A stretch of 64,000 nucleotides of DNA from Epithemia pelagica (lineage: Eukaryota > Protista > Bacillariophyta): the NCBI GenBank assembly GCA_946965045.2, contig OX337229.1:558001-622000 (forward strand), written 5' to 3'. Of this stretch, positions 4,397 to 42,396 are shown piece by piece. The notes under the pieces were generated by a model. The model was not told where the DNA came from, made no database searches, and saw only the letters and a program-made list of their open reading frames with translations. Positions within the stretch are counted from its first letter, which is position 1, and each line of letters starts with the position of its first letter. A program made the position numbers and the translations under genes.

Positions 4397-7300
4397 CTAG
4401 GATCCTGTCTCATCGGCCCAATCGGCGGAATTGGAAAAGACAAATCCCACCACCATGGCCCAAAAAATGGACCACAGGGCATACAGGACACCATCAAAGC
4501 GAAACAAAATGGGATCCAAGCCGGCCAAAATTTCCACAATAAAGTTGGCCACCGAACTCAGTGTCCCGCCAAACCCATTGATCAAACTCACCAAGACCAA
4601 CCGTTCTTCTTCATTGGGATTGCCTGCCAAGAGCCGGCCCAATCCACCCGACAAGGCACAGGCCAAAATGTTGCAACAAAAGGTTCCAATCGGAAAGGTC
4701 GGACGCCAATCATTGTATTTGCTCAACCGCCATCGAGCCAAGACACCCAGAGGAGAAAAGAGCAAACTCAAGGCCACGACTTGATTTTGTGGTTCGCTGT
4801 AAAAGGAAATGGAAGTACATTGCGTCACCACCGCCATCATGAACAGGACCGTCACAATCGCTCGAATCGACGGTGTTTGACGATTCTCCGCCTCGGGAGC
4901 AGCATCCCCCGTAGTGTTGGTTGGAGTCGAACGACGATGGCCATTCACCGGATCCTCGGTATCGTGGTTCTCCGGATTCGTTTCCGGGTGGTCCGTATCA
5001 TTCTCGTCGTCGTCATCGTCGTCGTTGGTATGCAATTGAATGCCATAGCCACGTCGTTCATCGCGTTTGGTTTCTTGTCGACACCGCCAGACAAAAATGT
5101 ACACGGCCACATGTTGTCCAAACCGATAGGCGACAATAGGCAATTGCAATCCCAACAAATATCCCACAATGGCTTCCCCAAATTGTCCCGCCCGAATCAA
5201 GTTGATCATGGCCGAATTCCACGACGAAAAACTACTGAGTGCGCCACAAAAACCAAACCGTAAGCCCAACATGAGATCGTCACTCATGTCTTCGGCCGTC
5301 GTACCGACATCCCATCCATTGGCCAAATTGACTCGACGCAACCGCGAAATGTTTTCCGAAACATTGGCCGAGACCTCATGGACAATTTGATTCAAATCGG
5401 CTGGATTGGCTTCGCCGTGCAATTCGACACCGTCTTGTGGAGGCGGTGGTTGGGATGACACGCCGTCCTGTGCTGGTTGTGCCGGTGTCGATGCTGGAGT
5501 GGTTGCGGGCGGTTGTTGTTGGTGTTGTGGTTGGGGCGTGGGAGCAGGAACGTTGTGGGGAGATTGATTCGACGAAGATTGCAATGGATCGACCCGTGAC
5601 GTTGGCGTTGTGGTTCTGGAGGCTGTTGATGCTGCTGCCACGGGGGAAACGGATGTGGGTGGTGACACTGTGGAAGAGGCGGTGGAGGGAGAGGGAGTTG
5701 CACTCGCTGCTGCTGTTGCAGACGGAGACGGTCGCAATCGGCCCTGTGATCCCTGGGGTGGTTGCTCCAATTGGTAGTGGTATTGTTCATTATCATCATC
5801 GTCATGATGTTCTTCCAACCACAATCCATCCATGACATCGTCATCTCCTTCATGATGATGATGATGATGATGATGATGAAACGTGTGTCCCCCACTGGCG
5901 ACTGCCTGTGATTGAGCAGCAGCAGCAGCATGTTTTCGTTTGTATCCATCGTCAAAGTAATGTTCCATGACATCCACATCTTCTTTGTTGACAGGAAAAA
6001 GGAGTAAACATTTGGATTGTCGAATCCGTCGTTCCAAGGCGAGTAATTGAACATCGCGTAATTCTTCATTCAAGGCTACCGGACGATGATCCAACCATCG
6101 TCGACGAGCTTGTTTCCAAAACAACGAAGACGATGCGGAAGAGGACGACGCATGTCCTCGTCGTCGACGTCGACGAAACAGGCCACCACCACCACCACGA
6201 CTTGTGAAGGCCATGTCGTCATGAGTTTCATCCCAGTCATCCAATCCCTCCGAATGCATCATCCCCGTAGAAGAAGAAGAGCTTCCTCTTCCCATGCGAG
6301 TCGGAGATGATGGATGAGGCGATAGCCCTGTCGAAACGGGAGGAATGGACAGGGGCGAGGGTCGCCGTTTCCCGGGAGACTGCGGTGCTTCGTTGATCAT
6401 CGAGCGGTTTGCCTCCGGTTCCCGGGAGTGGCGGTGGTGGTTCCGAGTGGAATCCATTGGGTTCTCATCTTCCTCTGGTTCTCCTTGTCGCTTATTATTA
6501 TCGACATTCTCGTCCGTAGTGTCGTTTCCTCGAGGTTGCATTTGTTGTTGCAGTCGGGGTGGAGAAAACCGGGTTGTGATGATTTCCATGCAGGATTCTC
6601 CCGAACACAACAATCCCAAGACAAAGCAGGACAAACAGTTGAGGGGTAAATTGACAAAGAGAGCCGATTGATTGGAAAAGACGGAATCGACAAAGGAAAA
6701 CCAATAGGAGGATCCCAATCGTGCCACAATGCCCAATTGGGTAAAGAGACTGAGAATGAGCAAGTCGTCGTAAATGTGCCAAAAATCCTTGACAAAGGCT
6801 TCATCCTCGGCAGCTTGTTGACGAAAATGATTGTCAAATTCCGCTTGACGATGTACGCTAGGATTGCTCGGGTTGCTATTATTGTTGGAAGGATGGTTAC
6901 TGGAAGCGTGCCAAGGAGACCCCTGGGTGTTTGAAGCTGAGTCCGTCACAGTCTGTTGTCGTTGCTCGGAAGGCGACGCCGACGACGATAAGGACCCGGT
7001 CGTCGTGGTCCTCGTTTCTCCAGAAGCATGCGATAAGGATGGTTGTTGCAAGGACGCGGGTGGTGCTTGCCGGCGTTGAGTCTTTGGAGTGTTTTGGGTA
7101 TTTTGGGGTGGATAAAAAAATTTGTGCAAGGCTTGCCGTCCTGGTTTCCCAATGGTTTCTTCCAAGGTATCCGTCACCACTTCTTGCCACGAATTGTCTT
7201 CTGTATTCGCCGCCGTTGATGATGCCGTGGGTCGCACCGCCGAAGAAGAAGAAGAAGCCGAAGCAGACAATGAGGAGGATCCAGCGGCAGCACGCGGATT

Positions 7301-7514
7301 TGGACCAGGAGTCGTACTAGAAGTAGGATTCCTCGGAGGACCCTTATTAGTTCGACTCGGCGACACAGAAGACGTTGCTGAGTTTGAATTCGTTGCTGCC
7401 GTAGGTTGTTGTTTCTTCAGGGATGGTGGTCGTACTGGTTTCGGAGAAGGGCCGGTGTTGGTTGTCACGGGTGGAGCTTTCCTCGGACTGGCAGTCTTGT
7501 CTGGTGAGGGCCTT

Positions 7515-7546
<32 letters not shown>

Positions 7547-7675
7547 AGTGGGGACATTGGAGGTTGTCTGGTCATCGACCGACCGAGTGCTCTTTGTATT
7601 GGAGGAGGCGTCCTTCACGGAGCTGGATTGAGAAGTCTTGGATGCTTGCGGTGGAGGACGAGAAGGGTGGTCCAT
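4397..7675 (-). CDS. FEX: Fluoride export protein (FEX; two fused CrcB/Fluc domains), 1092 aa
   Basis: CrcB motifs occur twice: LGIVARLG / LPLNCLSCFVLGLL / GLRFGFCGALSSFSSW and PLGVLARWRLS / FPIGTFCCNILAC / INGFGGTLSSVANF. Confidence 0.9.
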
Positions 7676-8523
7676 GATGGAAAATGGCTTTGGCGTTTTG
7701 TCTCAAAAAGAGGATACTTCTGGAAGAGGCCAAACACCACAAAAATTACTAAGAGCCACAACCAAACAACAACACAATGAGCGTTGGCGCCAGAACGACA
7801 AAAGAATGCCCAATGCCCGATATAGAATGGACGAAATGAATGAGGGGGATAATAAAAACGAAATGGGCGTGTGCCAAAAAGTCTGCTACCAAACGCGCGA
7901 CGAGGTGCGCAGAACAAATGCGACCGAATGACATTGACATCCCTTCCAATCACCCCACTACTGAATCACCACCCCACTTTGGAAAATCGCAATCACAAAG
8001 AGGTATAGCTATCCTTATCCCATTTCTTGCTTCGCCTCTATCTACTCCCATTATGGTATCACTATACTCGAGAGACCAAACCTTCTGGAAGGTATCGGGC
8101 TTCGTAATAGCTTTAATGTATCTTCGTTTTCGCTTTTCGCCAATGCGTCCGTTCTGGAAAGGAAAGAGAGAGCGTGTTGCAAAGGTGCGTTTCGTTCGTG
8201 GATGCCCCTCATGCAGGCGCATCTTTCTACTAGGAGCTATACGTGGGCCTCATCAACCTGAAGCGTCCGCGTCTTTTCCTGCACTAGAACAATGACAATG
8301 TTCTCCGAACGCCGCATATACAGTGCTTCTTGTAGAAAGAAAAAAAGAACAAAACGCATTCCATTCGAAATGTGTTTCGTCTTGTCGTCTGTTTCGACTT
8401 GCCTCATCTGCTACAGACCTGAATCCCTCAATGACTGGCTGTTCCATTCTCGCTCCGCTGTTCTGTGACAAAGTGCTTGCGCTTTTTTCGAACTCTCGTA
8501 TCTCCTACCACATGCCCAGCCCC

Positions 8524-10887
8524 TCACGACAAGTCCGAGGAGGTCAGGAGATAGCTTGGAATTTCTTGCGTCGGCTCCAGATCTCCATGTTCCTCAGCTT
8601 CCAAGACTTCCCGGAGATTGGCCAGACATTTGCGGTAGTGACGTGCCACGGTTCGTGCCCATCGCTGATACGATGACGCGTCCTTGGTATTAGCAGTGTT
8701 GTCCTCTTTCCAGGATTGGACCCGATCCGGCTCGGCAATTTCCTTGCGGAGTTTGGCAAACCGCCGTACGGAATCGTTGGGGGGCACCAGAGTCAAGGCT
8801 TGACCGGATTTTCCGGCCCGGGCTGTACGTCCACATCGATGAACATAGGTTCGCGCATAGCGGGGAATATTGTAATTCACCACCAAGGTAATCGTGTCCA
8901 AATCAATGCCTCGAGACATGCCATCGGAACAAACGACTACCGATGGGCGACGGCGACGATTACTTTTTGATTCCGTAGAGGATGGTTCTCGACAGTCTTG
9001 AATCAATTGGCTTCGATCCGTTTGTGATAGGGCACTGGAAAACTCGGCCACCTGGAGTTGCGACACGCACGACGAGGGACGGTCCAAAGATGTGGTGGTG
9101 GTGGTTGTCGTCTCGGCCTCTTGCATGGCCCACACCAGGAGTTGCAAGAGACGGGTTAAACGATGCGACGATTCGACACTGGAGGTAAAGACAAAGGCCA
9201 ATCCCTGTTTCGGTCCATCTTGTCGTTGTTGTTGTTGTTGTTCCAAATGCTGCAACAATGCCACACACAAGACCAAGGGCTTTTGTTCCATTGTACATTC
9301 CACAGTGTACTCCTCCAACAAGGGCGGCAACGCAAACTTGTTGCTGCTGCTGTTGTGAGCCTTGTTGTTGAGAGTTGCTGTTGTCGTCTTAATGGACAAT
9401 CGATGAACATTAAAGAGTTTGGGATTCACGAGCCGAAGTGACTGCAACTTTCGGGGATCTCGTGTCATGGTAGCCGACACCAAATATTTTCGTAACTGCA
9501 CTGGACGACGACCCTCGGGAATTCTTCCGAATTGCCTCGGGGATCCTGTCTCATTGGACCAAGAAGACGAAGAAGAAGGCGTTTGCACAAGGTCGTTGCG
9601 TCTCCAGGTAATTGGATCCAAGAAGGATGATGATGATAATAACGTGGCGTTCGTGCCCTGGTCGGTTTGGTTCCCATATTCGACTTGGTGTAAGACACGG
9701 TCAATCCAATTTTGATATCGTTCACTCAACAATCGATCGGCTTCGTCCACCACCAGAAACCGCAAATGTCGCAAACTAAAGCCGGGGGTACTGTCCATAT
9801 GATCAATCAGACGTCCAGGCGTGCAGACCAAGATATCAATGACATTGTCATGGATCGACAGAGCATTCGTAGGGGGACTTGAAAACTGCGACAAGTGTGT
9901 ATCAAAGTCCAGGCTTGCAGCCGTTGGAGTTTGAGAACCATTGTGACTGGCACTGGTACGAAATGCCATTTGTTCGGCTTCCCAGTCGGTTTGTCCTACA
10001 GCCAATCCAACTCGCAAATTGGAATGTCGAACATACTTTTCAAAGACGCTGTGCACCTGTTGGGCCAAATCTCGCATGGGCAAAATGACAAGGGCTGTCA
10101 AACGAGGGACACGCCGTTGTGACAAGGCATTGACAATGGGAAGAACATAACTCAGTGTCTTGCCGGAACCGGTGGGCGCCGTAATGCAAACATCCTGAAC
10201 TTCATGTTGCAACCTTCCCCGCAATTGCTGTTCCCAGGTAATGGTATCAGGAATAGACAATGCCTGGATGGGGAAAAACGACGTAAAACCATCCCGTTCC
10301 AAATTGCGAATCAAAAAGGGAGCCATTTTCCACGCCTCAGCAACTTGTTTCAAGGGGAGCGTCGAAACATGAAGGGCAGTTTGGACTTCTTGGGGTGTAG
10401 GTTCGACCACTCCATGATCGTCCATCGGAGAAACCGACGGTAGATGAGAATCTCTGTCTTGCTCCTCGTTTTCTTCTTCGTGGTGATCTTCTTCTTCTTC
10501 TCCATGGAGACCTTCAATCTCGTGAATAATGTTTTCCACGGGCTCCGGCTCTGTAGTTTCGGCGTCGAGGCTCTGTTCCTCATCGAGAGTATTGTTGCTT
10601 GTAAGAAAATCTGTTTCGGCCGATACAGGATCATCCTGCATGGGTTTGACCATTTTGTGTTGCCCTACTACATCCTTCTTTGCCTCGGTCGCTGTGGATG
10701 ATTGATATTCCTTGTTGTGACGGCTTCGTTTCTTTTTCTTGTTTGATTTAGTACGAGAATGGAGGATGTCTCTTTCCTCTCTGTCCAGATCATTTCGACC
10801 TCGTTTCTGCTTTGAGTGCATGTCCTTCGTCGTCTCTTGTGGAGGCTTGGTTGGATCATATCGTTCGACAATAATGGTGGGAGCCAT
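8524..10887 (-). CDS. DDX51: DEAD-box RNA helicase DDX51/Dbp6
   Basis: FPIQ, APTGSGKT, TPGRL, DEAD, SATMTRDPRKLQSLRL (Dbp6-type), SDGMSRGID, HRCGRTARAG. First ATG at 10887. Confidence 0.93.
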   Translation of the reverse strand: MAPTIIVERYDPTKPPQETTKDMHSKQKRGRNDLDREERDILHSRTKSNKKKKRSRHNKEYQSSTATEAKKDVVGQHKMVKPMQDDPVSAETDFLTSNNTLDEEQSLDAETTEPEPVENIIHEIEGLHGEEEEDHHEEENEEQDRDSHLPSVSPMDDHGVVEPTPQEVQTALHVSTLPLKQVAEAWKMAPFLIRNLERDGFTSFFPIQALSIPDTITWEQQLRGRLQHEVQDVCITAPTGSGKTLSYVLPIVNALSQRRVPRLTALVILPMRDLAQQVHSVFEKYVRHSNLRVGLAVGQTDWEAEQMAFRTSASHNGSQTPTAASLDFDTHLSQFSSPPTNALSIHDNVIDILVCTPGRLIDHMDSTPGFSLRHLRFLVVDEADRLLSERYQNWIDRVLHQVEYGNQTDQGTNATLLSSSSFLDPITWRRNDLVQTPSSSSSWSNETGSPRQFGRIPEGRRPVQLRKYLVSATMTRDPRKLQSLRLVNPKLFNVHRLSIKTTTATLNNKAHNSSSNKFALPPLLEEYTVECTMEQKPLVLCVALLQHLEQQQQQRQDGPKQGLAFVFTSSVESSHRLTRLLQLLVWAMQEAETTTTTTTSLDRPSSCVSQLQVAEFSSALSQTDRSQLIQDCREPSSTESKSNRRRRPSVVVCSDGMSRGIDLDTITLVVNYNIPRYARTYVHRCGRTARAGKSGQALTLVPPNDSVRRFAKLRKEIAEPDRVQSWKEDNTANTKDASSYQRWARTVARHYRKCLANLREVLEAEEHGDLEPTQEIPSYLLTSSDLS

Positions 10888-11236
10888 TTTGCCCCTTTGC
10901 TTCCCCGTGCTCCTTTTCGTCTCGACCACAGTATCCTACTAGAAAGCGGCAGAATCTCACGCACTTATACAATCATACCAGGCGACATGAAACCATGGTC
11001 GAGAGATTCTTTTTGTTGTCGGGGATAAAAAATGAATGGCCCGTCGAACTCTGTGATCCTTGCGCGACCCATAAGAGCGACCATAGCTCCTGTGGATATG
11101 CAGATGAGGTAGCTATGTTCTCGGAAGAGAAGCCTTGTCGACAGAAACCGCGTAGACGTAGACACTCCTCATCTTCCTCTCTCTTTCTTCTTTACTGTTG
11201 TTACAAGCAGAAAGCAGAACATCAAATCAATCGACC

Positions 11237-12190
11237 ATGGCGCTGGATAGAGGTTACGAAGATGATCATGCTGAACGCTTGTTAGTATCATCACGGAAAG
11301 TCAGCAAGAATCCTGATTATGTTTTTTGGACGGACTGCGAAGACAAGAATCAACTCAGCACAATTGCATCCGTTTATAGTGGTGCCATTATGCTCAAAAT
11401 GACAGTATTTGGACCAGGTGTCAAATCACCGTGGTTCGGACAAGCAGGAATGGTGAAGCTAAATGACGGAACGATTGATCTCGTAACAGCAAGGCACAAT
11501 CACGTAAGCGACGAGAATGCTAGCTTTCTATCGGCTATCGCCGAGTTCAAGGGGCCGTTCACATTCGGGACGAGCTTGAAGCCGGTGGATGCATCGTCCA
11601 TAAAACCGGTAACATGTGTCAGTGAAGATGGCGCATTTCCTTGGAAATATGGTATTGACATCTCGATTGCAAAATTTCTCTACAAGCCACCGCAACTGGC
11701 TCCTTGGGACCTCCATGCTTTTCACATTTTTGAACAGGCATCCACAGAATTTGAGCTGGTAAGTATAATTGGTTTTTTGGTTGGTCTTACGACGTACGCT
11801 CTCTAGACTTACATACTGCACCGTATCATTTTCAAGGCAAAAGGACTACGCGTAGCGATGACAATCTACACTGAAAAGGAAGCAACAGTAGTAAATAGCA
11901 AAGCGTATGAGAAAAAATTCTTCGACAACGACGCACTCCACGAAAAATATGGCTATGCCGAAAACTACAACGTTTACACTGGGGAAATTCTTTTTGTTGG
12001 AGAGGACCACTTTGAGCACAATATAAATTGCTTTCAAGGATGTTCAGGTGCAATTGTTTTTCTGCTGGAAGGCGATCATGCGGGAAAAGCTGTTGGTGTC
12101 CATGTAGGAAGCCCTGCATCTCGAGAGTCCAATCTCGCGTTCAAGATAACTGCTCTGCAGAGACCAGCTTCATTATCTTCGCACGAATGA
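11237..12190 (+). CDS. Trypsin-fold serine peptidase, 2 exons (11237-11758, 11837-12190), no signal peptide
   Basis: A phase-0 intron 11759-11836 (GTAAGT...TTTCAAG) joins two ORF-track pieces in frame. Catalytic triad in order: VTARHN, GIDISI, FQGCSGA, followed by AVGVHVG. Confidence 0.82.
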
Positions 12191-12208
12191 GAGGATAAGT
12201 GGCGGAGC

Positions 12209-12410
12209 GGACCCGATCCGGCTCGGCAATTTCCTTGCGGAGTTTGGCAAACCGTCGTACGGGATCGTTGGGGGGCACCAAAGTCCAGGCTTGACCGGAT
12301 TTGCCGGCTCGAGCTGTGCGTCCACATCGATGAACATAGGTTCGAGCATAGCGGGGAATATTGTAATTCACCACCAAGGCAATAGTATTCAAATCAATTC
12401 CTCGAGACAT
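12209..12410 (-). pseudogene. DDX51: Duplicated 202-bp fragment of DDX51 (motif V-VI region)
   Basis: Aligns without gaps to 8718-8919 with 14 substitutions. Homology stops abruptly on both sides. Confidence 0.9.
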
Positions 12411-12598
12411 TACAATTATATAAGAGAAGGGAAACCGATTACTGAGGTTATAGGTCCAACGATACATACACCCTGTATATAGTTCCTGTTCGAAAGCGCC
12501 AACACACATAGATGAAAACAAGAGGACGTGAAGCTTCCTCTGCAGTGCTGTTCACGTACAAGAACAAGAAGGGGTGAACGTGTGAACCCCCATTTCTT

Positions 12599-13834
12599 CT
12601 ACACGCATTCGGGTGGAAACATTTCTTCAAAACTATCGTCCTGAATGGCGTCTTGTAAAATTTGTTGGGTTCGAGATTTCAATGACGAGGAATCGTCCAT
12701 GGCAGCCACATGCCACTGCGTGGTTTCCACTGTGGTATTCAAAAGAACCAATCCACATAGCAATTCCTGCTCACTGGGTCGAGGGCACTCTACATGAATC
12801 AAACAGCAACACAAGTGAGTCGACATGTCATCATTTTCCATTGCCCATTTGGATCACATCGGGTGCAGCTACTTACGGACAAAGAGGGATGAGAGGACGG
12901 TCGCTGTGATTTGAAATGGACAGTTCAGTGTCGTTTCCAAACGTCGATGTTTCCCTCCAAATCCCGGTTCTTCTACGGACCCAGACAATGACGCCGACAT
13001 GGGCATCATTGTATTAGTGGTCATCCTGGAATGGTCACGATTCTCATTCATGGTTCGTTCTGGATCGAGCACTCCTTTCGAATGAGACGGATGTACCAAC
13101 GGACGAAGACGTGAATACGATGGAATAGGGCGTTTCGTCGTTGGGTCAACATTAGCGTCCAGTCCCCGATTGGGATGAGACTCGCTTGTTTGGAGTGGTA
13201 CAATGGTCGAATCGCACCCCAACCCACGCCGAAGGTTCCCTTTTACGGCCGATTCCAAACATGTCCCAATGATATCCTAAAAGTTTGGGGAACAACAACA
13301 CATCAAGAATCCATTCATGAGCCACAGACTATGCAACGAATCGGATTCCGGGTTCGAAGGACCTCCATTCCAGATCAAGTGACGTACCTGTGAAACATTT
13401 TTGGGATCAAACTGCACAATGACATCAAAGGTAAACGACGTTTTCACTGTCATGTCATTCATGACATGAAAACACAAATTGGAAAGAATGCCATGTTCCT
13501 CTTCCTCTTGTGGCACTGTACGCAAGGTAATGACAGGCTCCCGTCCACACATGGCTGGATTGGACGCGCAGGCGGCCCAATAAAAGAGTGCCACCGAACC
13601 CAAATCCAACCGGGCAAACTCCTCCGTCATCCCTGTCGGTTGTTCCATCGTTGTCGAAAGGATACGCCGAAACTCGAGATAGTCGGATTGCGTCACAAAA
13701 AGACCATCTGTCGATGACGCCTCCAGCGCATTCTGACAAGTCCCCAGGGCAGCATTCAAACGACGGTGGTTCTGTGCGTCACCACTGCCACGCGTGACGA
13801 AACTCAATACAAGTAAAACAGGAATCCATATCAT
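12599..13834 (-). CDS. Secreted hypothetical protein, 3 exons (13834-13388, 13276-12877, 12789-12599)
   Basis: Signal-peptide-like MIWIPVLLVLSFVTRGSG. Introns 13387-13277 (GTACGT...TTTTAG, phase 0) and 12876-12790 (GTAAGT...ATGTAG, phase 1) join three ORF-track pieces in frame. Confidence 0.78.
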
Positions 13835-14900
13835 CCGTAGTGACAGAATCCTCATCATTGTCGTTGTTGACGTTCTTATTTGACTGTGTTTGATATCTCA
13901 CCAACTCTCTTGCGCCGATTCTTGTTCTTGCCACAATGTCTCTTCTTTTGCTCGCTCTGTGGCATTCTCTGGTCTCGCAGAAATCATGAGGTTTTGTGAT
14001 GGTGCACTGATGATTCATCGATTACCACATACATTGGTTTGGTTGCCGTTCCCCACCATCAATTCCTGCGAACGGCAAGCGTTCAACGCTTGGGACACGG
14101 AACGGGTTCCCCATTGTCGTTTTGCAAACACTGCTCAACGGCCGAGTCCATGGTCCATTTGCAACGATGCGTTGTGCCCCGAGTCCCCCATGGTTCATCC
14201 AGTGCAAAACATCATTCGACCAAAATAGTTGGTAGGGAGAATCTGTTGCGTCCCCCCAATGACGGGTGTGACGTATTCGCGTTTCGGTCGCGTTGCGTGT
14301 ACGACTCCGCCGCTCGACTCCAACTAGCCACTCGTGCAGTAGCTAGGAGTTGCAGGCCGTTGGACATGATGACCATGAGGATTCTGCAATCGAGAAAGAT
14401 GGCGCAACTCCGAAGTCGAACCTCGAATATATCGATCTGAAAACAGTGTACGTTCATGCTTGTTGTTTGGATCGTGAGAGTGAGTCGATGTATAGTTTTT
14501 TTTGAAATGGTCTAGTCTATGGAGAATAACATACTTGAAGAATGCAAGGTTATGGACAGTTTAACGTAGCTACAGTTATATGCAAACAAAAAGAACAGAG
14601 AGATTTCTAGCAGAGACGACATTGCACGAATAAGTTTTGGGTACCGTTCCAGTATGGAGAGAACTGGGTTCCATGGAACCAAAAAAGAAGGGTTTTTCCG
14701 CTGGAACTCATCCTCACTGACGATAGCACAATCCCATAATCATTCTTTGGAGCGTATAGGCACGTTTCTTCTTCTTTTTTCTCTTTATTCCACGAGACTA
14801 AAGGACAAGTTGCGAACCGATCGTCCTCGTGTGGGAAATCGACCTCCCACGGCTGTACTGCTCGTCGATGTCGTGGATTGGGCCGAAAAACTTCGCGACA

Positions 14901-31894: not shown

Positions 31895-33133
31895 GCTGTA
31901 ATTGATAGCAGCGTGTGAGTACTTGGTATTCTGGGTGGTAAGATTTGCGGATCTGTGCTCGACGAGCTTCTGTCAGTGTTCAAAATTGTGTCGTGAGACG
32001 GGCCAAACAATTTTTTGTGAGCAGTGGAGGCGCTTTAGATTTTGGTAGGACTGGTTGCTCGACCAAAAACTATTACTGGCACGAATGACCTTAATACTGG
32101 AATGGAAGGACATACCGGCATACCATCTTACCAGTTGCTCGTAGAAGAAAGATTGTCCGCATAGTAACTACCTACAATGGTGGCTCCTAGAAGAAGATGG
32201 TCCGCATAGGAACTAGAAGAAAATGGTCCCATAGATCCTATACGGTTTCGAATTCTAGGATTATTAGCCGGCAACAGTGTACTATAGTTTTTTGGCTCGC
32301 GACTCTCGACTCTCGAGCATCGAGCTCGAGGAGAGATGGTCACGTTAACTGTACTACCCATGCATCATAAATCATAATTCATCTACCTACCGGTAGGTAA
32401 TACACAAAATCGATTCTCCCTGGACGAGAACAGGAGGGCTTGGTTGTGTCATTGTGGTCAGTGCACATACACAATCCTTCATGCGGTCTTCTTGTTCACT
32501 TTTGTCACCTGCCTGCTGCCTGCACATTGTGCAACTCCCACTCTACGATTCTTGTTCTTACTTTCTCGTTTTTTGTCAAGAGGGTTTCCAGCTTGTTTTT
32601 TTTGTCAAGGGGTTTCCAGTAATGTTCCAGTTCCACACAGATAAAGGATGATGTGAAACGTAGCGCAGTCTAGGAGGATATCTACCTTTTCTCTCCGTAT
32701 TCGTACTCCCTAGTTTGTCGCCGGTGTGTCCCGGGATGCACAGAACGTTATGATTTCACCGATTGATCGGTAAGCGGTAAGGTGTCTCCCTACCTGATGC
32801 GAACCCCCTCACAAAACGAGAACTCATCACTGACTCGCAAAGACAAAGACTCGTACTATACGAGTAGATTGAAACAGTGTATTATGAGTAAGCGATAAGT
32901 GAGAAATCGCTTGGGCATGGGTATGTGGTACGAGTACAAGTATGCCCTAATGAATACGATTACGAGTACATAAGAAGCAACACTACCTATTTCATCTCCC
33001 GATCAGTTTCCTTAGTCAAGGGTGGAACGCTCTCGTACAAGTACTCGTATATCTCAGATCAAGTGAGATCTTTACGATAGGGTGTCGATCATTTTTCACT
33101 TCCCATCGTACCCAAGAAATTAACCCTCCGTAT

Positions 33134-33165
33134 CGGTGACCACCTCTAAATCGTCTGCCAGTCGT
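33134..33165 (+). repeat. Left inverted repeat
   Basis: CGGTGACCACCTCTAAATCGTCTG-C-CAGTCGT: 24/24 match, 1 mismatch, then 7/7 match to the reverse complement of 39889-39920. Confidence 0.92.
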
Positions 33166-33356
33166 TCACCGAATTCTTCTCTGACCTGGTTTTTTTCCCT
33201 TTTGTCATACAAATTTTTTGGTCAATTTCCTATTCTTCACGCCGGCATGGTATCTCCTTCGTCGGCATTTGCGCCTCGCCCGACTCGGAAACTGTCCAAC
33301 CGCCTTTCTCCAACTCTTTCAAATATGGCATCCAGATCCTTTCGATCAACTATAAG

Positions 33357-34640
33357 ATGACCATGACAACTGTTCCAATTGGAACAGCTCAAGATGCGCA
33401 AGCTGATATTGATAATGCCATCCATCGTCAGTTCAACTGGCAAGCCGAACTTTATTTCACAGACCTTGAAAACTTTGACAATCAAGCAATAGATCTGTTT
33501 CAATTCACTGATAAAAACCACTACCATTTTTGACGACAATCATCCAAATCAAAAAGTACTGAAGAACTGCCACATTTGGTTATCTTTGACAGAAAGAAAT
33601 ATCCTCCGAATGATGACGGCATTAAGAGACTGTGCACAGCTCTAAAGATTGAGGGTATCAAATCAGGAACTAACCTTGTCTATCGCAGCCAAGCGCATGT
33701 TCTCTCTTGTTTCCGTTGTAGGAAACATGGTCCCCGACGTTCGAAAGTCATCCCATCTACCAACATCCCCGACCAACCAAATGGAAGCCCGATGGACAAC
33801 AATGATACGGCACAGCCAGACAACATTCTATCAGACGAAACTTTCGACAATGACGGTGTCCGTCTTGGTATACGAGATACCACCGTGATCGGAGCATGAA
33901 CCGTTGTGGTGGGAAATCATCTGTTCGGGGAACTTCGACAATGCGACCTGTTCATGCTGAAGAAACATGCAAAGTTGCACTGCGTCTTGGTGTGAAAGAG
34001 GGTCCTGACGGGTACATATACCTCAAACAAGGGTGTGGACATCGATTTCATTCTTTCCACCCCAAACCACAAAAAGGTGATCTGTGTTTTGCTAAACGCC
34101 ACATTTCCGACTCCACATACAAGCTCATTACCAGTGGTGCTAAAGTTTCTGTGGGCAATGGCTCTCTAAGATGCATTGTCTTAGAAAATCAAAGTGAGCT
34201 GATATCCCGTGGATCAATACAAAGAATTCGAATGGAGCCTGACTTCCTAACAAACAATGAGCAACGTGAGTCCACTGCTTCCCAGATGGTGCACTGGTTA
34301 CAAAAGCATGCAGCAGATCCAAATGTAGGATTGTGTTATTGCTTTCTCTCTTGCCGTCAAAGCAGATATCCCGGCTACCACCGACATCCCAAAGGAAGGC
34401 CTGGACAAACTGGAAGAATTCCTCTTGACAAAATAGAGGAAAACATGGAATATGTGGATACTCTCGAGAATACCTATAGAACAGCTCAAAGTGTAGAACA
34501 ATCACAAGAGCTCCCTTTGGACAACAATGCACTCAATCAGACATTGAACATGGCTCGAGAAATTCATAATGATTCATTGATTGATCTCAAAAGTCATAGA
34601 ATTCTCCTGGGGGCAGGGTGGGTTGATGCTCAAGCCTGTT
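33357..34640 (+). pseudogene. Degenerate Mutator-like transposase 5' half (FAR1/WRKY-GCM1-like zinc domain), truncated before the DDE core
   Basis: One in-frame TGA (~33531) and one frameshift (33896-33899). LSCFRCRKHG ... TCKVALRLG...YIYLKQGCGHRFHSFHP, then RILLGAGW immediately before the 97-bp array. Family call is from remembered motif pattern only. Confidence 0.5.
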
Positions 34641-35498
34641 CATTTGTTGGGGTTGACAGTCGGCACCTTGTTTGGGCCATTGGAGGGATCGTTCTTTGGA
34701 CTGGTCGTCGGCAAACTGAGTAGAGCACAAGATGGTTCATTTGTTGGGGTTGACAGTCGGCACCTTGTTTGGGCCATTGGAGGGATCATTCTTTGGACTG
34801 GTCGTTGGCAAACTGAGTGGAGCACGAGATGGTTCATTTGTTGGGGTTATCAGTCGGCACCTTGTTTGGGCCATTGGAGGGATCATTCTTTGGACTGGTC
34901 GTCGGCAAACTGAGTGGAGCACAATATGGTTCATTTGTTGAGGTTGACAGTCGGCACCTTGTTTGGGCCATTGGAGGGATCATTCTTTGGACTGGTCGTC
35001 GGCAAACTGTGTGGAGCACAATATGGTTCATTTGTTGAGGTTGACAGTCGGCACCTTGTTTGGGCCATTGGAGGGATCATTCTTTGGACTGGTCGTCGGC
35101 AAACTGAGTGGAGCACAATATGGTTCATTTGTTGAGGTTGACATTCGGCACCTTGTTTGGGAAATTGGAGGGATCATTCTTTGGACTGGTCGTCGGCAAA
35201 CTGAGTGGAGCACAAGATGGTTCATTTGTTGAGGTTGACAGTCGGCACCTTGTTTGGGCCATTGGAGGGATCGTTCTTTGGACTGGTCGTCGGCAAACTG
35301 AGTGGAGCACAATATGGTTCGTTTGTTGAGGTTGACAGTCGGCACCTTGTTTGGGCCATTGGAGGGATCGTTCTTTGGACTGGTCGTCGGGAAACTGAGT
35401 GGAGCACAAGATGGTTCATTTGTGGGGGTTGACAGTCGGCACCTTGTTTGGGCCATTGGAGGGATCGTTCTTTGGACTGGTCATGGGCAAGCTGAGTT
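34634..35498. repeat. Tandem array, 97-bp unit, about 8.9 copies
   Basis: Unit starts at 34731, 34828, 34925, 35022, 35119, 35216, 35313 and 35410. The unit is seven 12-nt blocks plus one 13-nt block, each beginning GG. Confidence 0.98.
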
Positions 35499-35548
35499 TT
35501 GTCCATTGGAGTCTGATGACAAGGCAATTGGACATTTTCATTATTTTA

Positions 35549-37800
35549 TTAGTTGAGTGGTTCTTGAATAGAATCCGATAAATATTTGGTTCTGGTAGAG
35601 TGTTCGAATTTTTCATCAATACGGGCATGTTTGATTCCTTTTGATATCACAGCCTCATGCTTCATGTAAATTTCATGTCCCAATTTGAATGTCGCATCAT
35701 AGGGCCATCGTACAACTAGAGGTCCAACGGTGTAAACAGACATGCCATTTTTCTTCCATAACACAACACCACTCTTTGTGGGCTCGTACACAATTTGATC
35801 GGCCCATACAAGATCAGTGAATCTTTGTGCTTCTTTGTGTTGGGCTTGAAATATGTTGCACACAATACTCTCTGCATTTCTTCGGGAACAAAATTTTCCT
35901 GACACATCTTCAACGGCCTTTGTGAAAGAATCAAGCAGTTGTTTTGTCCCTTGTTCCCCTTTCCTCAAACCATATTCACGGCTCAAGAATGAAAACCACA
36001 TGATTCATGAGTACCTTGTATTTCGAAAGAATACCACAACGGGACACACCCAACAATGGACATTGCATTTATCAGATGATTAGTTCCCACGACACCACAT
36101 GAAGGCAAACTTCCCTTCAATCCCTTCATAGTCATGTTGTATAAGTTTGCCCTTGTTTTCTTGTTCGTTGGTGCATCGTCATATCCGAATGATTGAATGC
36201 AGACAAATACCATATGCCGTATCTGTTCCTTAAACTGCTCGAAGGATGGTAGATTTGTTTCAGAACTTGTTGTAAATCGTGTCCCAGGGATTGGTTTCTT
36301 TGAATTTTTATACGAACCATATATCTCGTGAACTCTTTCCAATAGGTTGTATCCAAATTCCAATCCGGTCTGCTTCAGCACAGGTCGCTGTAATACTTCA
36401 ATAAGCGCAGCGGTAGCAAAGAACGTTGTGAAGGAACACAATGCAAAAGACCGGAAGATGCATATGACCTCCACAAAATCAAGATGGAATTGTTTGATCA
36501 TTCGCAAACTGTAGTGAATAATGGGAGACACATAGATGGACGCCTCTAAGTGACATGGATACAGACTGTAACCAATTCCGCACCAAGCACCATCACTCTT
36601 GGTCGTCGTTGCAAATGTTAATGGGCCAGTGTTTTTTCTTGCATCGTCAATAGATTCATACCTGTGCAATAGGAATCGGAGAGACGGACCAATGTCTTCG
36701 TTCTCCCTGCGCTCTGCATCCAATATGGACTTCCTTGTAGCGGCAATTACTGAAATTCTCAAAGAACGCACACCACATGGAACAACCTTGGAAAGAATCA
36801 CAACCTCTGGAAAATTAGGATCATTGAGATCATCATCGTGAAAGCCACATTGTCCAACTTCTGCTGAATTTACGTCTGTTGCAGCTATCCGAATGTATTC
36901 AATTACATTCTCCTTATCGATTCGCTTTGCATACCTTTCCAGTCGCTGGGTCGAACGGCCATGCCAAACATGAGGACAGTTTTGTTTGATCATTTTTGTC
37001 ATTGTACAAAGTACCTTGACCATTATAGGGTCCATTGTTCCATCCAACATCGAAGGACGTGACAGTCTGTGATTGGCCTTATCACGAGAAAAGGCACCAC
37101 CACCACCAAACCCGGCATCTTGCCAGAGATGTTGTCGTGGCATATGCGTTGATCTGTCACTAACCATCCCTTCTTTCTGCAGAAGTAACAGAGAAGAAAG
37201 ATCCTGCCATGGTAGACCAATCTCCTCTATGATCCGTGTTTCAATAAATTGGAAGTCGGCTGAATTGGGTGGGAAAGAATCTTGCTTTGGAAAAACTGAA
37301 TGGACGGGGATGATACATTCTTCTGGGAACTTGAAATCAGGTGCATTTGCAGTGAAATGCCCATGCGGAATGTGAAGTGATTTGGCCACTGTGCAGACTG
37401 TGACTTCATCCAATGGTTGGTAATTAGAAACAATGGAACTCATGTAGTCCAATCTGGCATGGAAAAAAGGACCTTCGGACATCATCTGCTTTTGTAGCGA
37501 TCTGGGAACGTCCTTCCACTTTTTTGATGGAATTTCAAAAAGGAATGGAAGAGCCATTTTATACTTCACTGATGCTTTCTGATCCATCTTGTGCTTCTTG
37601 GAAACGTGCTTAGGCTGACGTTCTGCATCAATAATCTCACGCGATGTGGAAGTACTTATGTCTCGTGGAACCGACTGGGTCTCGACAGGAACCTTATCAA
37701 CACTCGACCAACTTGTGTCTCCATCAAGTAGATCAGCAATAACACGGAGAAGACCAGATACCTTCCGACAACGACCCTCATCAACGAGTAATCGATCCAT
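35549..37800 (-). CDS. Cargo ORF (605 aa + 150 aa joined by one frameshift near 35990-36004); uncharacterised, with HxDxxN...RxS and HhH-like motifs
   Basis: Two overlapping ORF-track entries. One extra T in the GGTTTTC run fuses them (GTHESCGFSFLSREYGL). Motifs: GFHDDDLND, LRISVIAATRKS, SLPSCGVVGTNHLI, NAESIVCNIF. Confidence 0.7.
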
Positions 37801-37804
37801 TTCG

Positions 37805-39492
37805 GAGAGTCACTGTTCGGACCCAATATACTGTCCCAATGGACTAGTATAGGGTCCTTTGAGATGAGGATCGAGCCAGGTCAAGCAACCAATCACCAGA
37901 AATCAACAATCAACCTCAGTCACTGGTGCCCACTGGTCCAGATGGCAGCTGCAACCCAAAAGAGGACGAGAAAATTCTTCAGCCGAGAGTCACTATTCGG
38001 ACCCAATATACTGTCCCAATAGACTAGTATAGGGTCCTTTGAGATGAGGATCAAGCCAGGTCAAGCAACCAATCACCAGAAATCAACAATCAACCTCAGT
38101 CACTGGTGCCCACTGGTCCAGATGGCAGCTGCAACCCAAAAGAGGACGAGAAAATTTTTCAGCCGAGAGTCACTATTCGGACCCAATATACTGTCCCAAT
38201 AGACTAGTATAGGGTCCTTTGAGATGAGGATCAAGCCAGGTCAAGCAACCAATCACCAGAAATCAACAATCAACCTCAGTCACTGGTGCCCACTGGTCCA
38301 GATGGCAGCTGCAACCCAAAAGAGGACGAGAAAATTTTTCAGCCGAGAGTCACTGTTCGGACCCAATATACTGTCCCAATAGACTAGTATAGGGTCCTTT
38401 GAGATGAGGATCAAGCCAGGTCAAGCAACCAATCACCAGAAATCAACAATCAACCTCAGTCAATGGTGCCCACTGGTCCAGATGGCAGCTGTAACCCAAA
38501 AGAGGACGAGAAAATTTTTCAGCCGAGAGTCACTGTTCGGACCCAATATACTGTCCCAATAGACTAGTATAGGGTCCTTTGAGATGAGGATCAAGCCAGG
38601 TCAAGCAACCAATCACCAGAAATCAACAATCAACCTCAGTCAATGGTGCCCACTGGTCCAGATGGCAGCTGCAACCCAAAAGAGGACGAGAAAATTTTTC
38701 AGCCGAGAGTCACTATTCGGACCCAATATACTGTCCCAATAGACTAGTATAGGGTCCTTTGAGATGAGGATCAAGCCAGGTCAAGCAACCAATCACCAGA
38801 AATGAACAATCAACCTCAGTCAATGGTGCCCACTGGTCCAGATGGCAGCTGTAACCCAAAAGAGGACGAGAAAATTTTTCAGCCGAGAGTCACTGTTCGG
38901 ACCCAATATACTGTCCCAATAGACTAGTATAGGGTCCTTTGAGATGAGGATCAAGCCAGGTCAAGCAACCAATCACCAGAAATCAACAATCAACCTCAGT
39001 CAATGGTGCCCACTGGTCCAGATGGCAGCTGTAACCCAAAAGAGGACGAGAAAATTTTTCAGCCAAGAGTCACTGTTCGGACCCAATATACTGTCCCAAT
39101 AGACTAGTAAAGGGTCTTTTGAGATGAGGATCAAGCCAGGTCAAGCAACCAATCACCAGAAATGAACAATCAACCTCAGTCAATGGTGCCCACTGGTCCA
39201 GATGGCAGCTGCAACCCAAAAGAGGACGAGAAAATTTTTCAGCCGAGAATCACTGTTCGGACCCAATATACTGTCCCAATAGACTAGTATAGGGTCCTTT
39301 GAGATGAGGATCAAGCCAGATCAAGCAACCAATCACCAGAAATGAACAATCAACCTCAGTCAATGGTGCCCACTGGTCCAGATGGCAGCTGCAACCCAAA
39401 AGAGGACAAGAAAATTTTTCAGCCGAGAATCACTGTTCGGACCCAATATACTGTCCCAATAGACTAGTATAGAGTCCTTTGAGACAAGGATC
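37805..39492. repeat. Tandem array, 180-bp unit, about 9.4 copies
   Basis: The sequence recurs exactly every three 60-nt lines with a few variant sites. There are stops in all six frames of the unit. Confidence 0.98.
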
Positions 39493-39888
39493 TGACAGAA
39501 TCAAGCAAAAAGCAACAACCAAATGATCCTTCGAATGAGTTGCTTGTTGAAGCCAACACAAATTCAAAGTCAATGAAAAAAAGTTGCTGGAAAGAGATTG
39601 CCCTTGCAAGTAGAGCAATGAGTGCCTTTGAGCGTTATGCAGAGCTATTCAAATATTCGATCATTCCAAAAGACTTATCTTACAAGACTGTTTTAGCAAC
39701 AAGATCGACAAAACTGTCCATTGTCCATTGTTATGCTGCACTGCACCCATTCAATTTTTGGTGGGTGGGAAGTTTCGAGTGGCAGTTGGTGGTGAGGAAA
39801 AATGGGGACGCCAGCCAAGCCAACACTCGATGAAATTTTTCCTCTTGTGGGAGAGGAAATTTGGTGCGAAAGACAGACTTGGGGAAGG

Positions 39889-39920
39889 ACGACTGTCAGA
39901 CGATTTAGAGGTGGTCACCG
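39889..39920 (-). repeat. Right inverted repeat
   Basis: ACGACTG-T-CAGACGATTTAGAGGTGGTCACCG, the reverse complement of 33134-33165 with one mismatch. Confidence 0.92.
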
Positions 39921-41508
39921 GAGCCAATCCAAATGATTTTATTGTTCACCAGACCGCTTGAAATAAGTCGTTATCCGACAACGAGAAAACTACCTATCAC
40001 CAATCACCACGTATCCCCGTCTTAAAGAATAGGAGTAGCTTTCACCCGGTACTGGCAGGGAAAAGAAACGTCATGCAATCTTGGACTGGACCTACCACCT
40101 TCCATTATTCGGGTTTGGAATCTCCAACATGCCCCTATCATTTCTTAAATAATGTCATTGGAAAGTATAGCATTGTCTCGAAGAATAATCAATCCAATAG
40201 CAGAAATATCAGAAATCCAGTTCTTCTACCCGGCGTCCACTTCCACGCACCCTTGGGAGAAGTTGACTCGTCTGGACCATCCTAAGAGCCCAAGATAGTT
40301 GATTACTCTAGAACTACTACTTCTACACGACAGGTCGTGAGTGGCTGACATAATACTTTATGAATTCTTACAAAAAAGATCAGCTCGACAGCAAACCAGT
40401 CCACACAAGTTCTGGAGGGAAAGTTGCCCCTGAAGCTGATCGAATTGGTTTGCTCACGAGCAGGACTACAAATGGAACGATACTGCCGGTTCCCCTGTTG
40501 ACATTGGATGTTCTGCTGTCTCATGGTATGGCAACACACAAGGCAACCGCTGTTGACTCGTCACCAGTTGTTGTGCGTTGTCGTCTTTCATTGGCCAGCC
40601 GAAAAGAATCGAAAATGAATTTTTCAACAGACAAGACCTTTGTCCGAACGAGCTCAAAGCATGGAGAAGAAAGTCTTCGGAAGGTTGCCGGGGTGATGAG
40701 TTTCTTTGATCACTGAATGAAAAGTATCTCATTGACGATCGAAAGGGGAGGAACAGATTTGACGAACTCAGTGGCAATTCCACAAGTCCCACTGACTCGG
40801 AGTTGTTGCATCTTCTCGTCCTCGGTCAGACGGGGCGCCGCCGAGTTCTGCACTATGCACTATGGCGATTTGTGTCAAGGGCGACAGGCGATTGTTGGGT
40901 GTTCCGTATTGTGACGACATGAAAGTCCACCATACATCAGCATAAAATGTTGGTAGTTCCTGGTTCCCGGGGACAAAAGATGCGAGCATCGAGCATCGAC
41001 CTCGACCGGGTCGCGGAGGGGATACAAGATATTTTTTGGTCGCGGTTGTATGAGGAGGACAAAGGGGGGGTTAAATAATGTCTGCGAATAAAACTTTCGC
41101 GCTTCCACATCGTAGAAGTACGAGTACAGGGCTTTGTTTCACATTTTCAAGATGTTCAATGGTCGATCCATCATACAACATTATTTCAACGGCAGGACAA
41201 GAACAAGAACGTTTGTCTGTACCAAGAAGATTCGCATGCCGATGTCGCAAGTCGCAACATGCAACTTCCAACGTCTCCGAACTGTCCGATATCCAAAGCT
41301 GTTCGACGCGACTGGGATCCTTTGTACGAGTATCCGTAGACATATTATGATGACATACGAGAGATGCCATAGCGCGAATAAGCACAGTGGAATCTCTCTT
41401 GCACTTTGGAGACGTGGTCCAGTTCATTCATGTTGTTGTGGTCGTGTTCCTTCTGTTGGTGAAAATCGAAGAGTGGAGTTTTAATCAGTCATCATAAAAG
41501 GTTTTACA

Positions 41509-42396
41509 ATGGGTTTGAATATCAGGGCACGCTTGCGCAACATCTTTCATAGGTCTCGACCAGTCGATGGTGGGAGCCTCGACGCTCCTCCTCGATCGCC
41601 GGTAAGAATCTCGCCTTCCAAAGCCCAGAGGCCAGTGGTGGTGGAAGTCCTTGAGCCTGGTCCCGTCGTTCTTCGACGAGTTGTGGACGACGAGGGCTGT
41701 GAACGACTGGCGCGTGCGGCCTTTGAAATGGGATCGCAAAACCACGGGGACGATGGTTTTTACATGTCTACGGGAGAACTCAATACGGGAGATGCCGGAC
41801 GAGGAAGGATTTACGATGCGGCTAGTCGTTTTCCTTCCTTTGTCGTGGATCACTGCCGCCATTCAGTTCAGCTGGCGCGCGAACTAGATACGGCCATGCC
41901 CGAGATGGACTGTACCCATGTTCTGCTGAACATGTACACCAACTCCGATGGTTTGACATGGCACCGAGATATCTACGAGAATGATGGACGATCCGATCAT
42001 CCAGTGGTTAATCTATGTGTCGGTGCATCTTGTTCTTTCGGTTACAAACACAAGGATGAGGACGAGGCAAAGATTTTAACACTTCGGTCGGGAGACTGTA
42101 TCTTGTTCGGTGGACCGTGCCGCTTAATCAAGCATTCTGTGTTGAATGTGGATCTCAACGACTGTCCTGCATGGATGAAAGACCAATCGGTTCGTTTTAG
42201 CTTTACGTTTCGAGATTCTCCTGAAGTATTGGGTCGAGAACATGAACTTAAGTACTTCAGAGTAAGCGAGCATTCGGTTGGTCAAGAGACCTTCCATGTG
42301 CCCGTCAGTGAAGAACAGCGTAAGAGTCGAAGAGGGTTGCCTTCAATGGCAACACAGAAGTTTGATCCTAGTTCGATGTATTTGCCGGCTGCATGA
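41509..42396 (+). CDS. alkB: AlkB-family 2OG-Fe(II) dioxygenase
   Basis: LLNMY..SDGLTWHRD, PVVNLCVGASCSF, LRSGDCILFGG..RLIKHSV, RFSFTFR (HxD...H...R). Confidence 0.9.
   Translation: MGLNIRARLRNIFHRSRPVDGGSLDAPPRSPVRISPSKAQRPVVVEVLEPGPVVLRRVVDDEGCERLARAAFEMGSQNHGDDGFYMSTGELNTGDAGRGRIYDAASRFPSFVVDHCRHSVQLARELDTAMPEMDCTHVLLNMYTNSDGLTWHRDIYENDGRSDHPVVNLCVGASCSFGYKHKDEDEAKILTLRSGDCILFGGPCRLIKHSVLNVDLNDCPAWMKDQSVRFSFTFRDSPEVLGREHELKYFRVSEHSVGQETFHVPVSEEQRKSRRGLPSMATQKFDPSSMYLPAA

Follow-up and report, generated by a model that had tools for sequence, protein, structure and literature searches.

A decayed two-gene Mutator-like transposon in the diatom Epithemia pelagica, with a second gene predicted to encode a TET/JBP-like and glycosylase-like protein

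The maize element MuDR, which carries the genes mudrA and mudrB, is an autonomous Mutator element; its two genes are transcribed convergently from the ends and it has many internally deleted derivatives. In the VANDAL elements of Arabidopsis, VANC is a sequence-specific binding factor and does not have an enzyme fold. VANDAL elements are cited in a survey of fungal transposons with TET/JBP genes, which describes ten lineages (Kojima 2025, PMC12730594); these do not include Mutator, and the survey makes no mention of diatoms. The carriers in that survey belong to Kyakuja-Dileera-Zisupton, Plavaka, hAT, Harbinger, IS3EU, EnSpm, ESTA as well as Helitron (PMC12730594). Among diatoms, Phaeodactylum tricornutum has an active Mutator-like element (MULE) of 3.7 kb with terminal inverted repeats (TIRs) of about 200 bp, target-site duplications (TSDs) of 9 bp and a second open reading frame (ORF) that is E3-ligase-like (bioRxiv 10.1101/2023.01.02.522487). 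In the full-text literature we found no paper that joins TET/JBP with a diatom, or with Mutator. Here we describe an element of this kind in a stretch of 64,000 nucleotides from the raphid pennate diatom Epithemia pelagica (assembly GCA_946965045.2, contig OX337229.1, positions 558,001 to 622,000), hereafter called the window, in which positions are counted from the first letter.

We report that this element is, with near certainty, a MULE, and that the copy in the window is just as surely a defective, non-autonomous and decayed derivative of a young Mutator-like transposon with two genes. Specifically, the transposase of intact copies matches MULE-type domains, and the second gene, hereafter the cargo gene, would encode a protein for which structure models predict two domains. 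We consider it probable, with good confidence in the models, that this protein combines a diverged TET/JBP-like fold with a fold of the helix-hairpin-helix (HhH) glycosylase superfamily; we stop short of assigning it to the Pfam family Tet_JBP. Tentatively, we propose that the element is a two-gene MULE whose TET/JBP-like and glycosylase-like cargo may counter methylation silencing, a chain of steps that we regard as quite possible as a whole, though short of probable.

The copies were searched for with exact-sequence look-ups, and four were found in one assembly (ENA ERZ21939226): the window copy and three others, which are labelled L001, L006 and L009 (Table 1). Three further labels are used, L002 for a sister family and L007 and L008 for diverged lineages. 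The four copies are 99.25-99.51% identical across the cargo gene and their flanks are mutually unrelated. Read contigs from three public runs of the organism show a word depth within the element of 2.6-3.9x that of the unique right flank, in agreement with four copies. The Pfam domain MULE was found in the transposases of L001 and L009 with 56.3 and 54.3 bits, respectively (cutoff 27.6; 4.6e-15 and 1.9e-14), and ZSWIM1-3_RNaseH-like in both with 42 bits (1e-10), which is above its cutoff. A match to Pfam SWIM of 14.5-16.9 bits, under the cutoff of 19.6, lies at the expected position downstream of the catalytic domain. The L002 transposase likewise matches Pfam MULE-type domains, relatives of the transposase occur in Cylindrotheca closterium at 39-42% identity, and the pieces of transposase that are left in the window gave no Pfam match.

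The organisation of the element is best seen in the intact copy L009. Its left TIR is followed by a single transposase ORF of 1,035 amino acids (aa), 228 bp from the left end, then by 14 units of a 97-bp tandem repeat, which begin at the transposase stop codon and leave approximately 50 bp before the stop codon of the 750-aa gene that is convergent with it. Upstream of this second gene stand 10.4 units of a 180-bp repeat, which stop 4 bp before the cargo start codon, and then 406 bp that end in the right TIR. Transposase and cargo gene are convergent, each being read inward from its own end. The sister family L002 shares these termini and this layout, at 60% identity for the cargo protein and 72-78% for the DNA. 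Among the four copies the cargo frame is open in three, and the transposase is damaged in three and intact only in L009; L001 carries a private TAA stop. A 69-bp in-frame segment of the transposase (34317-34385) is present in the window, in L006 and apparently in L009, and missing from L001; both forms are seen among the DNA read contigs (word depth 169 versus 70).

In the window, inverted repeats matching at 31 of 32 positions (33134-33165 and 39889-39920) were first seen. The pattern occurs at just these two places in the window, with 0 matches expected from 100 shuffles. Comparison of the copies, and of these with the diverged family L002, puts the true ends of the element further out, 10 bp to the left and 5 bp to the right. 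The termini of intact copies start with CCCTCCGTAT followed by CGGTGACC on the left and with GGCTCTGTAT followed by CGGTGACC on the right, giving TIRs of 42 bp, and these bound the four near-identical copies as well as the one diverged family. The last 143 bp of the right subterminal region have 77.6% identity to L002. The right TIR of the window has lost 5 bp (ATACA on the + strand), and the loose end after 39920 reads ATACAGAGCC in contigs of three runs. The preliminary description of this stretch, which was made from its letters, had recognised repeats of about 32 bp around two convergent genes, a transposase-like relic and a minus-strand cargo frame, and two internal arrays, and had assigned them to a diatom Mutator-like family of which longer copies with an intact DDE domain and the same cargo might exist. 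This picture stands, with the termini shifted outward: both genes are present in the sequence, Tandem Repeats Finder (TRF) returned both arrays, Pfam MULE and ZSWIM1-3_RNaseH-like in the intact copies agree with the family assignment, and L009 is such a longer copy. Moreover, the repeat recurs at other loci in unrelated flanks, and cargo and transposase are linked there too, in three diverged lineages; the refuting outcome that the preliminary description had named is thereby not borne out.

The damage in the window copy affects both genes. On the + strand, the pieces of the transposase ORF start approximately 230 bp inside the left repeat; compared with the other copies they contain a nonsense codon (CGA>TGA at 33531-33533, itself a CpG transition) and a 7-bp deletion after 33875. 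A deletion of 1.84 kb joins 34637 to the 97-bp array, by which the MULE catalytic core and the SWIM region are gone; read contigs run on from 34637 into transposase-core sequence that is absent from the window. In the cargo gene 1 bp is missing after 35989, giving a frameshift at position 1811 of the coding sequence (CDS), where read contigs have an extra T. Its minus-strand ORFs in the window are one of 605 aa (35983-37800), which is 98% identical to the intact 750-aa protein P0001, and a 150-aa continuation in another frame (35549-36001). The window copy has its value as one of the four copies that jointly define the ends, the decay and the CpG mutation bias.

Regarding this bias, 42 substitutions could be polarised using three copies, and 13 of these are C>T or G>A at CpG, which makes up 6.8% of the sites; this corresponds to a six-fold excess per site. 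The element has an observed/expected ratio of CpG of 0.57 and its 180-bp array one of 0.29, compared with 0.95 in the rest of the window. An excess of CpG transitions together with CpG depletion is the expected mark of 5-methylcytosine (5mC) deamination, and this mutational pattern suggests, if indirectly, that the host probably methylates these copies. In P. tricornutum, 5mC is confined to transposons according to reports that are cited in PMC12344493.

The structure of the cargo protein was modelled with AlphaFold2 from an alignment of 48 sequences (pLDDT 84.8, pTM 0.81), the dioxygenase-like domain also alone (pLDDT 85.1, pTM 0.87), and the models were compared with 48,161 PDB chains using an aligner that is independent of Foldseek. 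In the model, residues ~80-370 form a double-stranded beta-helix that is TET/JBP-like and carries an HxDxxN motif, and residues ~370-660 form a helical domain resembling HhH glycosylases, followed by a small C-terminal beta domain. For residues ~90-370 of the whole model the matches were NgTET1 (Z 8.4), TET2 (7.1), CMD1 (6.8) and CcTet (6.6), with the AlkB family next. When the domain was modelled by itself, NgTET1 (Z 8.9), CcTet, TET2 and CMD1 were the best four of the 48,161 chains, followed by AlkB/FTO, and the remaining matches listed are nearly all 2-oxoglutarate (2OG) oxygenases. Shape searches of predicted structures point the same way: the top match in the ESM Atlas is a cluster in which 78% of the members have Tet_JBP (TM 0.41), and several JBP1/TET oxygenase domains were found among the AlphaFold DB clusters (probability 0.90-0.96). 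An ESM Atlas shape search with the whole-cargo model gave nothing useful. Two identities suggested by language-model searches were discarded, namely a RAG1 RNase H from the whole protein (score 0.85, 115 shared features), for which no structural search gives support, and a match of part of the protein to OTU clusters (0.7), which was judged to be noise.

The helical part of the model (residues ~370-685) matched the 5-phosphomethyldeoxyuridine (5-PmdU) glycinyltransferase gp46 of phage PaMx11 (PUGT; Z 9.1) and the queuine-salvage DUF2419 (8.1), followed by the glycosylases Tm Ogg (Z 7.1), AGOG, Mag1, AlkA, NTHL1 and EndoIII, where a Z below about 13 for a helical domain can mean a common arrangement of helices only. 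The top AlphaFold DB match for residues 422-662 was the helical domain of a 5-hydroxymethyldeoxyuridine (5-hmdU) DNA kinase (probability 0.99). These two top matches bring in another reading, in which the cargo would be a base-hypermodifying enzyme: the dioxygenase would make 5-hydroxymethyluracil (5hmU), or 5-hydroxymethylcytosine (5hmC), the helical domain would derivatise it, and the DNA of the element would be marked in this way. Consistent with it, the nearest Tet_JBP cluster in the Atlas is mostly from phages, phages have thymidine hypermodification pathways with aGPT-Pplase/PUGT enzymes (PMC8989533), and a TET/JBP homologue yields 5hmU in dinoflagellates (PMC11572971). The element encodes no kinase or transferase partner, however, and the low helical-domain Z speaks against leaning on the phage match. 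Moreover, the HxDxxN motif of the cargo is one that we take to resemble the cytosine-contacting motif of TET. On balance we regard hypermodification as unlikely.

Conserved residues were identified in the cargo family. H321-x-D323 is invariant (46/46 members), N326 is present in 42/46, R348 in 45/47, with an aromatic residue six positions further on in most members (RX5-aromatic), and R356 in 47/48; R239 and P249 are nearly invariant across the family. H146 is present in every one of the 33 members whose sequence includes the N-terminal part. It is the only other invariant His and lies upstream of HxD, which makes it the sole candidate for the third iron ligand. In the helical domain an HhH motif, G-x-L-x-x-N-H...G-L-x-P-x-W, is conserved. 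All conserved residues are present in the L009 cargo protein, the window cargo has a private R235G change, and that of L001 has a private R304W change at a conserved arginine.

Several results weigh against the proposal that a TET/JBP-like cargo counters methylation silencing. No Pfam match was obtained for the cargo or 47 relatives (48 members in all) at E up to 10, Tet_JBP (PF12851) included, and sequence-profile searches of PHROGs and PDB with the cargo were blank, as was Foldseek against PDB with both the whole-cargo and the domain models. The structural scores are moderate (Z 6-9, TM 0.25-0.41). After HxD there is no conserved distal His (H417 is His in only 26/47 members); the position of the glycosylase catalytic Asp, after G584..P587, is variable and in many members E; and the diatom lineage has changed two conserved C-terminal residues (N645S and K649N, turning ExNxxCK into ESxxCN). 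NgTET1 oxidises thymine as well, and the CpG decay means that any protection from methylation is incomplete. Finally, no TSD was detected at any of five insertions (window, L001, L002, L006 and L009) by eye, by local flank alignment or by brute force (offsets -15 to +15, lengths 2-11 bp). The flanks are A/T-rich, e.g. AAATTAA-element-AATCC at the window junctions 33123/33124 and 39925/39926. Neither a paralogous empty site among the compared loci nor a loose end of an empty allele in the read contigs was seen; TSD and empty site had both been looked to for defining the ends. A TSD of 8-11 bp is a defining trait of Mutator elements, and its lack at these five insertions is left as an anomaly; to our knowledge, Mutator insertion without TSD is unreported.

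The same lack of a conserved distal His, of a conserved glycosylase Asp and of a Tet_JBP profile match could also be explained if the cargo were a non-catalytic DNA-binding regulator that keeps an enzyme-like shape and is closer in function to VANC or MURB than it is to TET. We find this doubtful, and rather more so than the hypermodifying enzyme, given that H321, D323, H146 and three arginines hardly vary, if at all, in 40-48 members at only about 20% identity, a pattern that is typical of an active site and not of a scaffold.

To place the cargo family, a profile search among 1.84 billion representatives was done, in which 220 relatives reached E <= 1e-3 and 94 the stricter E <= 1e-10; those looked up are metagenome proteins. 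In three lineages, the window family, L002 and L007, the cargo gene and a MULE transposase gene are convergent; their cargo identity to that of the window is 98%, 60% and about 36-43% (the L007 cargo being a remnant), respectively. The L007 transposase has 54% identity. A fourth lineage, L008, is a related MULE with a transposase of 45% identity and has no cargo. Between the window family and L002 the proportion of synonymous differences (pS) is 0.61, i.e. synonymous sites are near saturation. The cargo has a ratio of nonsynonymous to synonymous substitution (dN/dS) of 0.21 and the transposase one of 0.07-0.16. These low values indicate purifying selection on both genes within the element lineage.

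Among distant metagenomic homologues, one stands in convergent orientation to a gene whose protein matches ZSWIM RNase H-like weakly, and another has a neighbour gene of no recognised type. On a metagenome contig (L003) a cargo homologue of 30% identity lies near a gene for a PIF1 helicase of 1,126 aa (6142-8727 and 10618-13998), and L003 may be a Helitron-type carrier of the cargo enzyme family. In L002 an 87-bp tandem array (L002:10058-10406) encodes four repeats of 29 aa at the start of the cargo protein, such that the repetition extends into the coding region.

Both tandem arrays were compared between copies and lineages. In intact copies the two convergent genes are separated, from stop codon to stop codon, by the 97-bp array. 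It is found at the same place in L001 (x9), L009 (x14) and L002 (x4.3), and is lost from L006. The unit consensuses of the window family and L002 align without gaps and are identical at 66 of 97 positions (68%) versus 39% at synonymous sites; period, register and position are common to both families, and the conserved blocks include two TGCCGA motifs. Since the identity is well above that of synonymous sites, the comparison suggests that the 97-bp array is under constraint. A single 97-nt unit gave no structured-RNA signal (z-scores 0.16-0.92). The 9-mer CGACTGTCA, common to the right TIR and the 97-bp unit, was tried as a meaningful motif and rejected: it was equalled in 61/2,000 shuffles (p about 0.03), is in neither the left TIR nor the TIRs of L002, and is treated as chance.

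The 180-bp array stops 4 bp upstream of the cargo start codon and contains no open frame; besides the units in the window there are 10.4 in L001 as well as in L009 and about 23.5 in L006 (L006:14807-19040). Each of the three lineages has an array directly upstream of the cargo start codon, with units of 180 bp in the window family, 182 bp in L002 and 177 bp in L007. By inspection, the 180-bp (37805-39492) and 177-bp (L007:14139-15444) units have a short core in common, CAATCAACC (GGTTGATTG in the cargo sense), and the window 180-bp unit holds ACCAATCA, which is CCAAT-box-like. Inspection also shows a plausible polypyrimidine-AG and a GT in the 180-bp unit, but the 34 nt between these contain stops in two frames, and a reading of the array as coding mini-exons was rejected on that ground.

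The arrays and the linkage bear on whether cargo and repeats serve the element at all. If the cargo were a captured host passenger gene, in the style of Pack-MULEs, and the arrays neutral satellite, neither would aid spread, and one would expect such features as are seen in part: the 180-, 182- and 177-bp arrays share almost no sequence and vary in copy number from 1.8 to 23.5, L006 has lost the whole 97-bp array, and L008 is without cargo. Against this, purifying selection has acted on the cargo across element lineages, three of which keep it, always convergent with the transposase, the 97-bp unit holds its period and register at an identity far above that of synonymous sites, and an array of about 180 bp is directly upstream of the cargo start in each of the three lineages. 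We therefore consider a mere passenger to be highly improbable.

The anti-silencing interpretation of the cargo draws on its predicted TET/JBP-like and glycosylase-like folds, the linkage to the transposase, the purifying selection and the CpG decay of the copies. According to this proposal the dioxygenase domain would oxidise a 5-methylpyrimidine in DNA, most likely 5mC, given that diatoms place 5mC on transposons and that the copies bear its mutational mark. The helical domain, as a base-flipping domain, would then bind the oxidised base and excise it or process it further. As a net result, methylation silencing of the element would be erased or blocked, in trans on all copies, including the dead copy in the window. 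More speculatively, the 97-bp array might serve the convergent genes as a two-way terminator or keep them apart as a spacer, and a multimerised upstream control region might be what the array of about 180 bp provides. A stronger version, in which the cargo is a one-chain DNA demethylase (a TET-like domain plus a glycosylase-like domain that flips out and removes the oxidised base), both arrays are working parts and insertion occurs without TSD, appears unlikely to us. The preliminary description had regarded the second gene and the arrays as a self-protection module comparable to VANC and its target motifs. An anti-silencing role is plausible on the basis of modelled fold, linkage and selection; no likeness to VANC was seen, in that the cargo had no Pfam match at all, the VANC sequence itself not having been compared, and the likely agent would be an enzyme and not a binder. 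In the sequence comparisons there was no sign of the cargo protein acting on either array.

Table 1. Features of the element in the window, followed by the four copies (each copy in the coordinates of its own sequence)
Feature	Position	Strand	Size	Basis or state
Left TIR	33124..33165	+	42 bp	outer 10 bp CCCTCCGTAT and inner 32 bp; similarity to L001, L006 and L009 begins exactly at 33124
N-terminal transposase gene relic	33357..34637	+		base-by-base comparison with L001; read contigs; intact ORF in L009
97-bp tandem array	34638..35497		8.9 units, 95% matches	TRF
Second (cargo) gene	35549..37800	-	750 aa if intact	ORFs and intact homologue P0001
180-bp tandem array	37805..39492		9.4 units, 98% matches	TRF
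Right subterminal non-coding region (180-bp array to right TIR)	39493..39888			aligns to L001, L006 and L009
Right TIR	39889..39925	-	37 bp	cut by copy-specific 5-bp deletion between 39920 and 39921
Window copy	33124-39925		6.8 kb	dead derivative
Copy L001	7697-16456		8.76 kb	transposase split
Copy L006	9762-19463		9.7 kb	lacks the C-terminus of the transposase and the 97-bp array
Copy L009	9773-19059		9,287 bp	intact

The surroundings of the other copies are rich in mobile elements and include a weak match to a piggyBac-type DDE domain, Copia-type RVT_2 polyproteins and Harbinger DDE_Tnp_4 (L001:4077-6278, L006:1-3444, L008:3023-7255 and L007:17019-17939). The housekeeping gene for eIF3 subunit F adjoins L001; its best named relatives, at 56-65% identity, come from Entomoneis, Epithemia, Amphora, Seminavis, Nitzschia, Pseudo-nitzschia and Cylindrotheca, and, like those of the transposase, they place the host among the raphid pennate diatoms. 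In the window, a host ORF of 295 aa with an AlkB-type 2OG-Fe(II) oxygenase domain (41509-42396, + strand; Pfam 2OG-FeII_Oxy_2, 3.8e-21) lies 1.6 kb downstream of the element; that it neighbours an element with a dioxygenase-like cargo is probably a coincidence.

Transposon-borne TET/JBP genes have so far been described in fungi only, and never in Mutator elements (PMC12730594). If the proposal is true, the diatom case would mean that the mobile elements of distant eukaryotes have independently gained base-oxidising enzymes, a response to methylation silencing that recurs. The joining of the two domains, one of them glycosylase-like, points to a compact enzyme by which a base would be oxidised and then removed or processed, an activity that can be assayed directly and that may provide a useful tool. 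The cargo family is large, with 220 representative clusters from metagenomes, none of which has a Pfam annotation, and naming it would annotate many environmental sequences. Moreover, the missing TSD, if real, bears on how these transposases cut their targets.

In comparison with known systems, the element resembles MuDR in having two convergent genes and non-autonomous derivatives. It differs in that mudrB is unrelated to the cargo, and in its ends, the TIRs of MuDR being about 215 bp long and its TSDs 9 bp, compared with TIRs of 42 bp and no TSD seen here. With VANDAL21/Hiun of Arabidopsis it has in common that a MULE carries an accessory gene, proposed to act against methylation silencing of its own family, and internal non-coding tandem repeats; VANC binds sequence, whereas here the cargo has a predicted enzyme fold and the arrays are without sign of being targets. 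NgTET1, CcTet, TET2 and CMD1 on the one hand, and PUGT gp46 and the HhH-GPD glycosylases on the other, are the top structural matches of the cargo, and the HxD(xxN) motif and an arginine in RX5-aromatic context are likewise present; in contrast to these proteins, the cargo has no sequence-profile similarity to them and no identifiable distal His, and it would unite two folds in one chain. The active MULE of P. tricornutum is similar with respect to its MULE and SWIM transposase (the SWIM match here being under the cutoff), its second ORF, deleted or frameshifted derivatives and TA-rich insertion sites, and different in being without a TET-like gene and in that no arrays are reported for it (bioRxiv 10.1101/2023.01.02.522487). 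Finally, as in the fungal TET/JBP transposons, a cut-and-paste element carries a putative dioxygenase gene beside the transposase, with escape from methylation silencing as the proposed function (PMC12730594). Unlike in the fungal systems, the host here is a diatom, the carrier is Mutator-like and the cargo, too diverged for Pfam Tet_JBP, is predicted to be fused to a glycosylase-like helical domain and is encoded between conserved tandem arrays.

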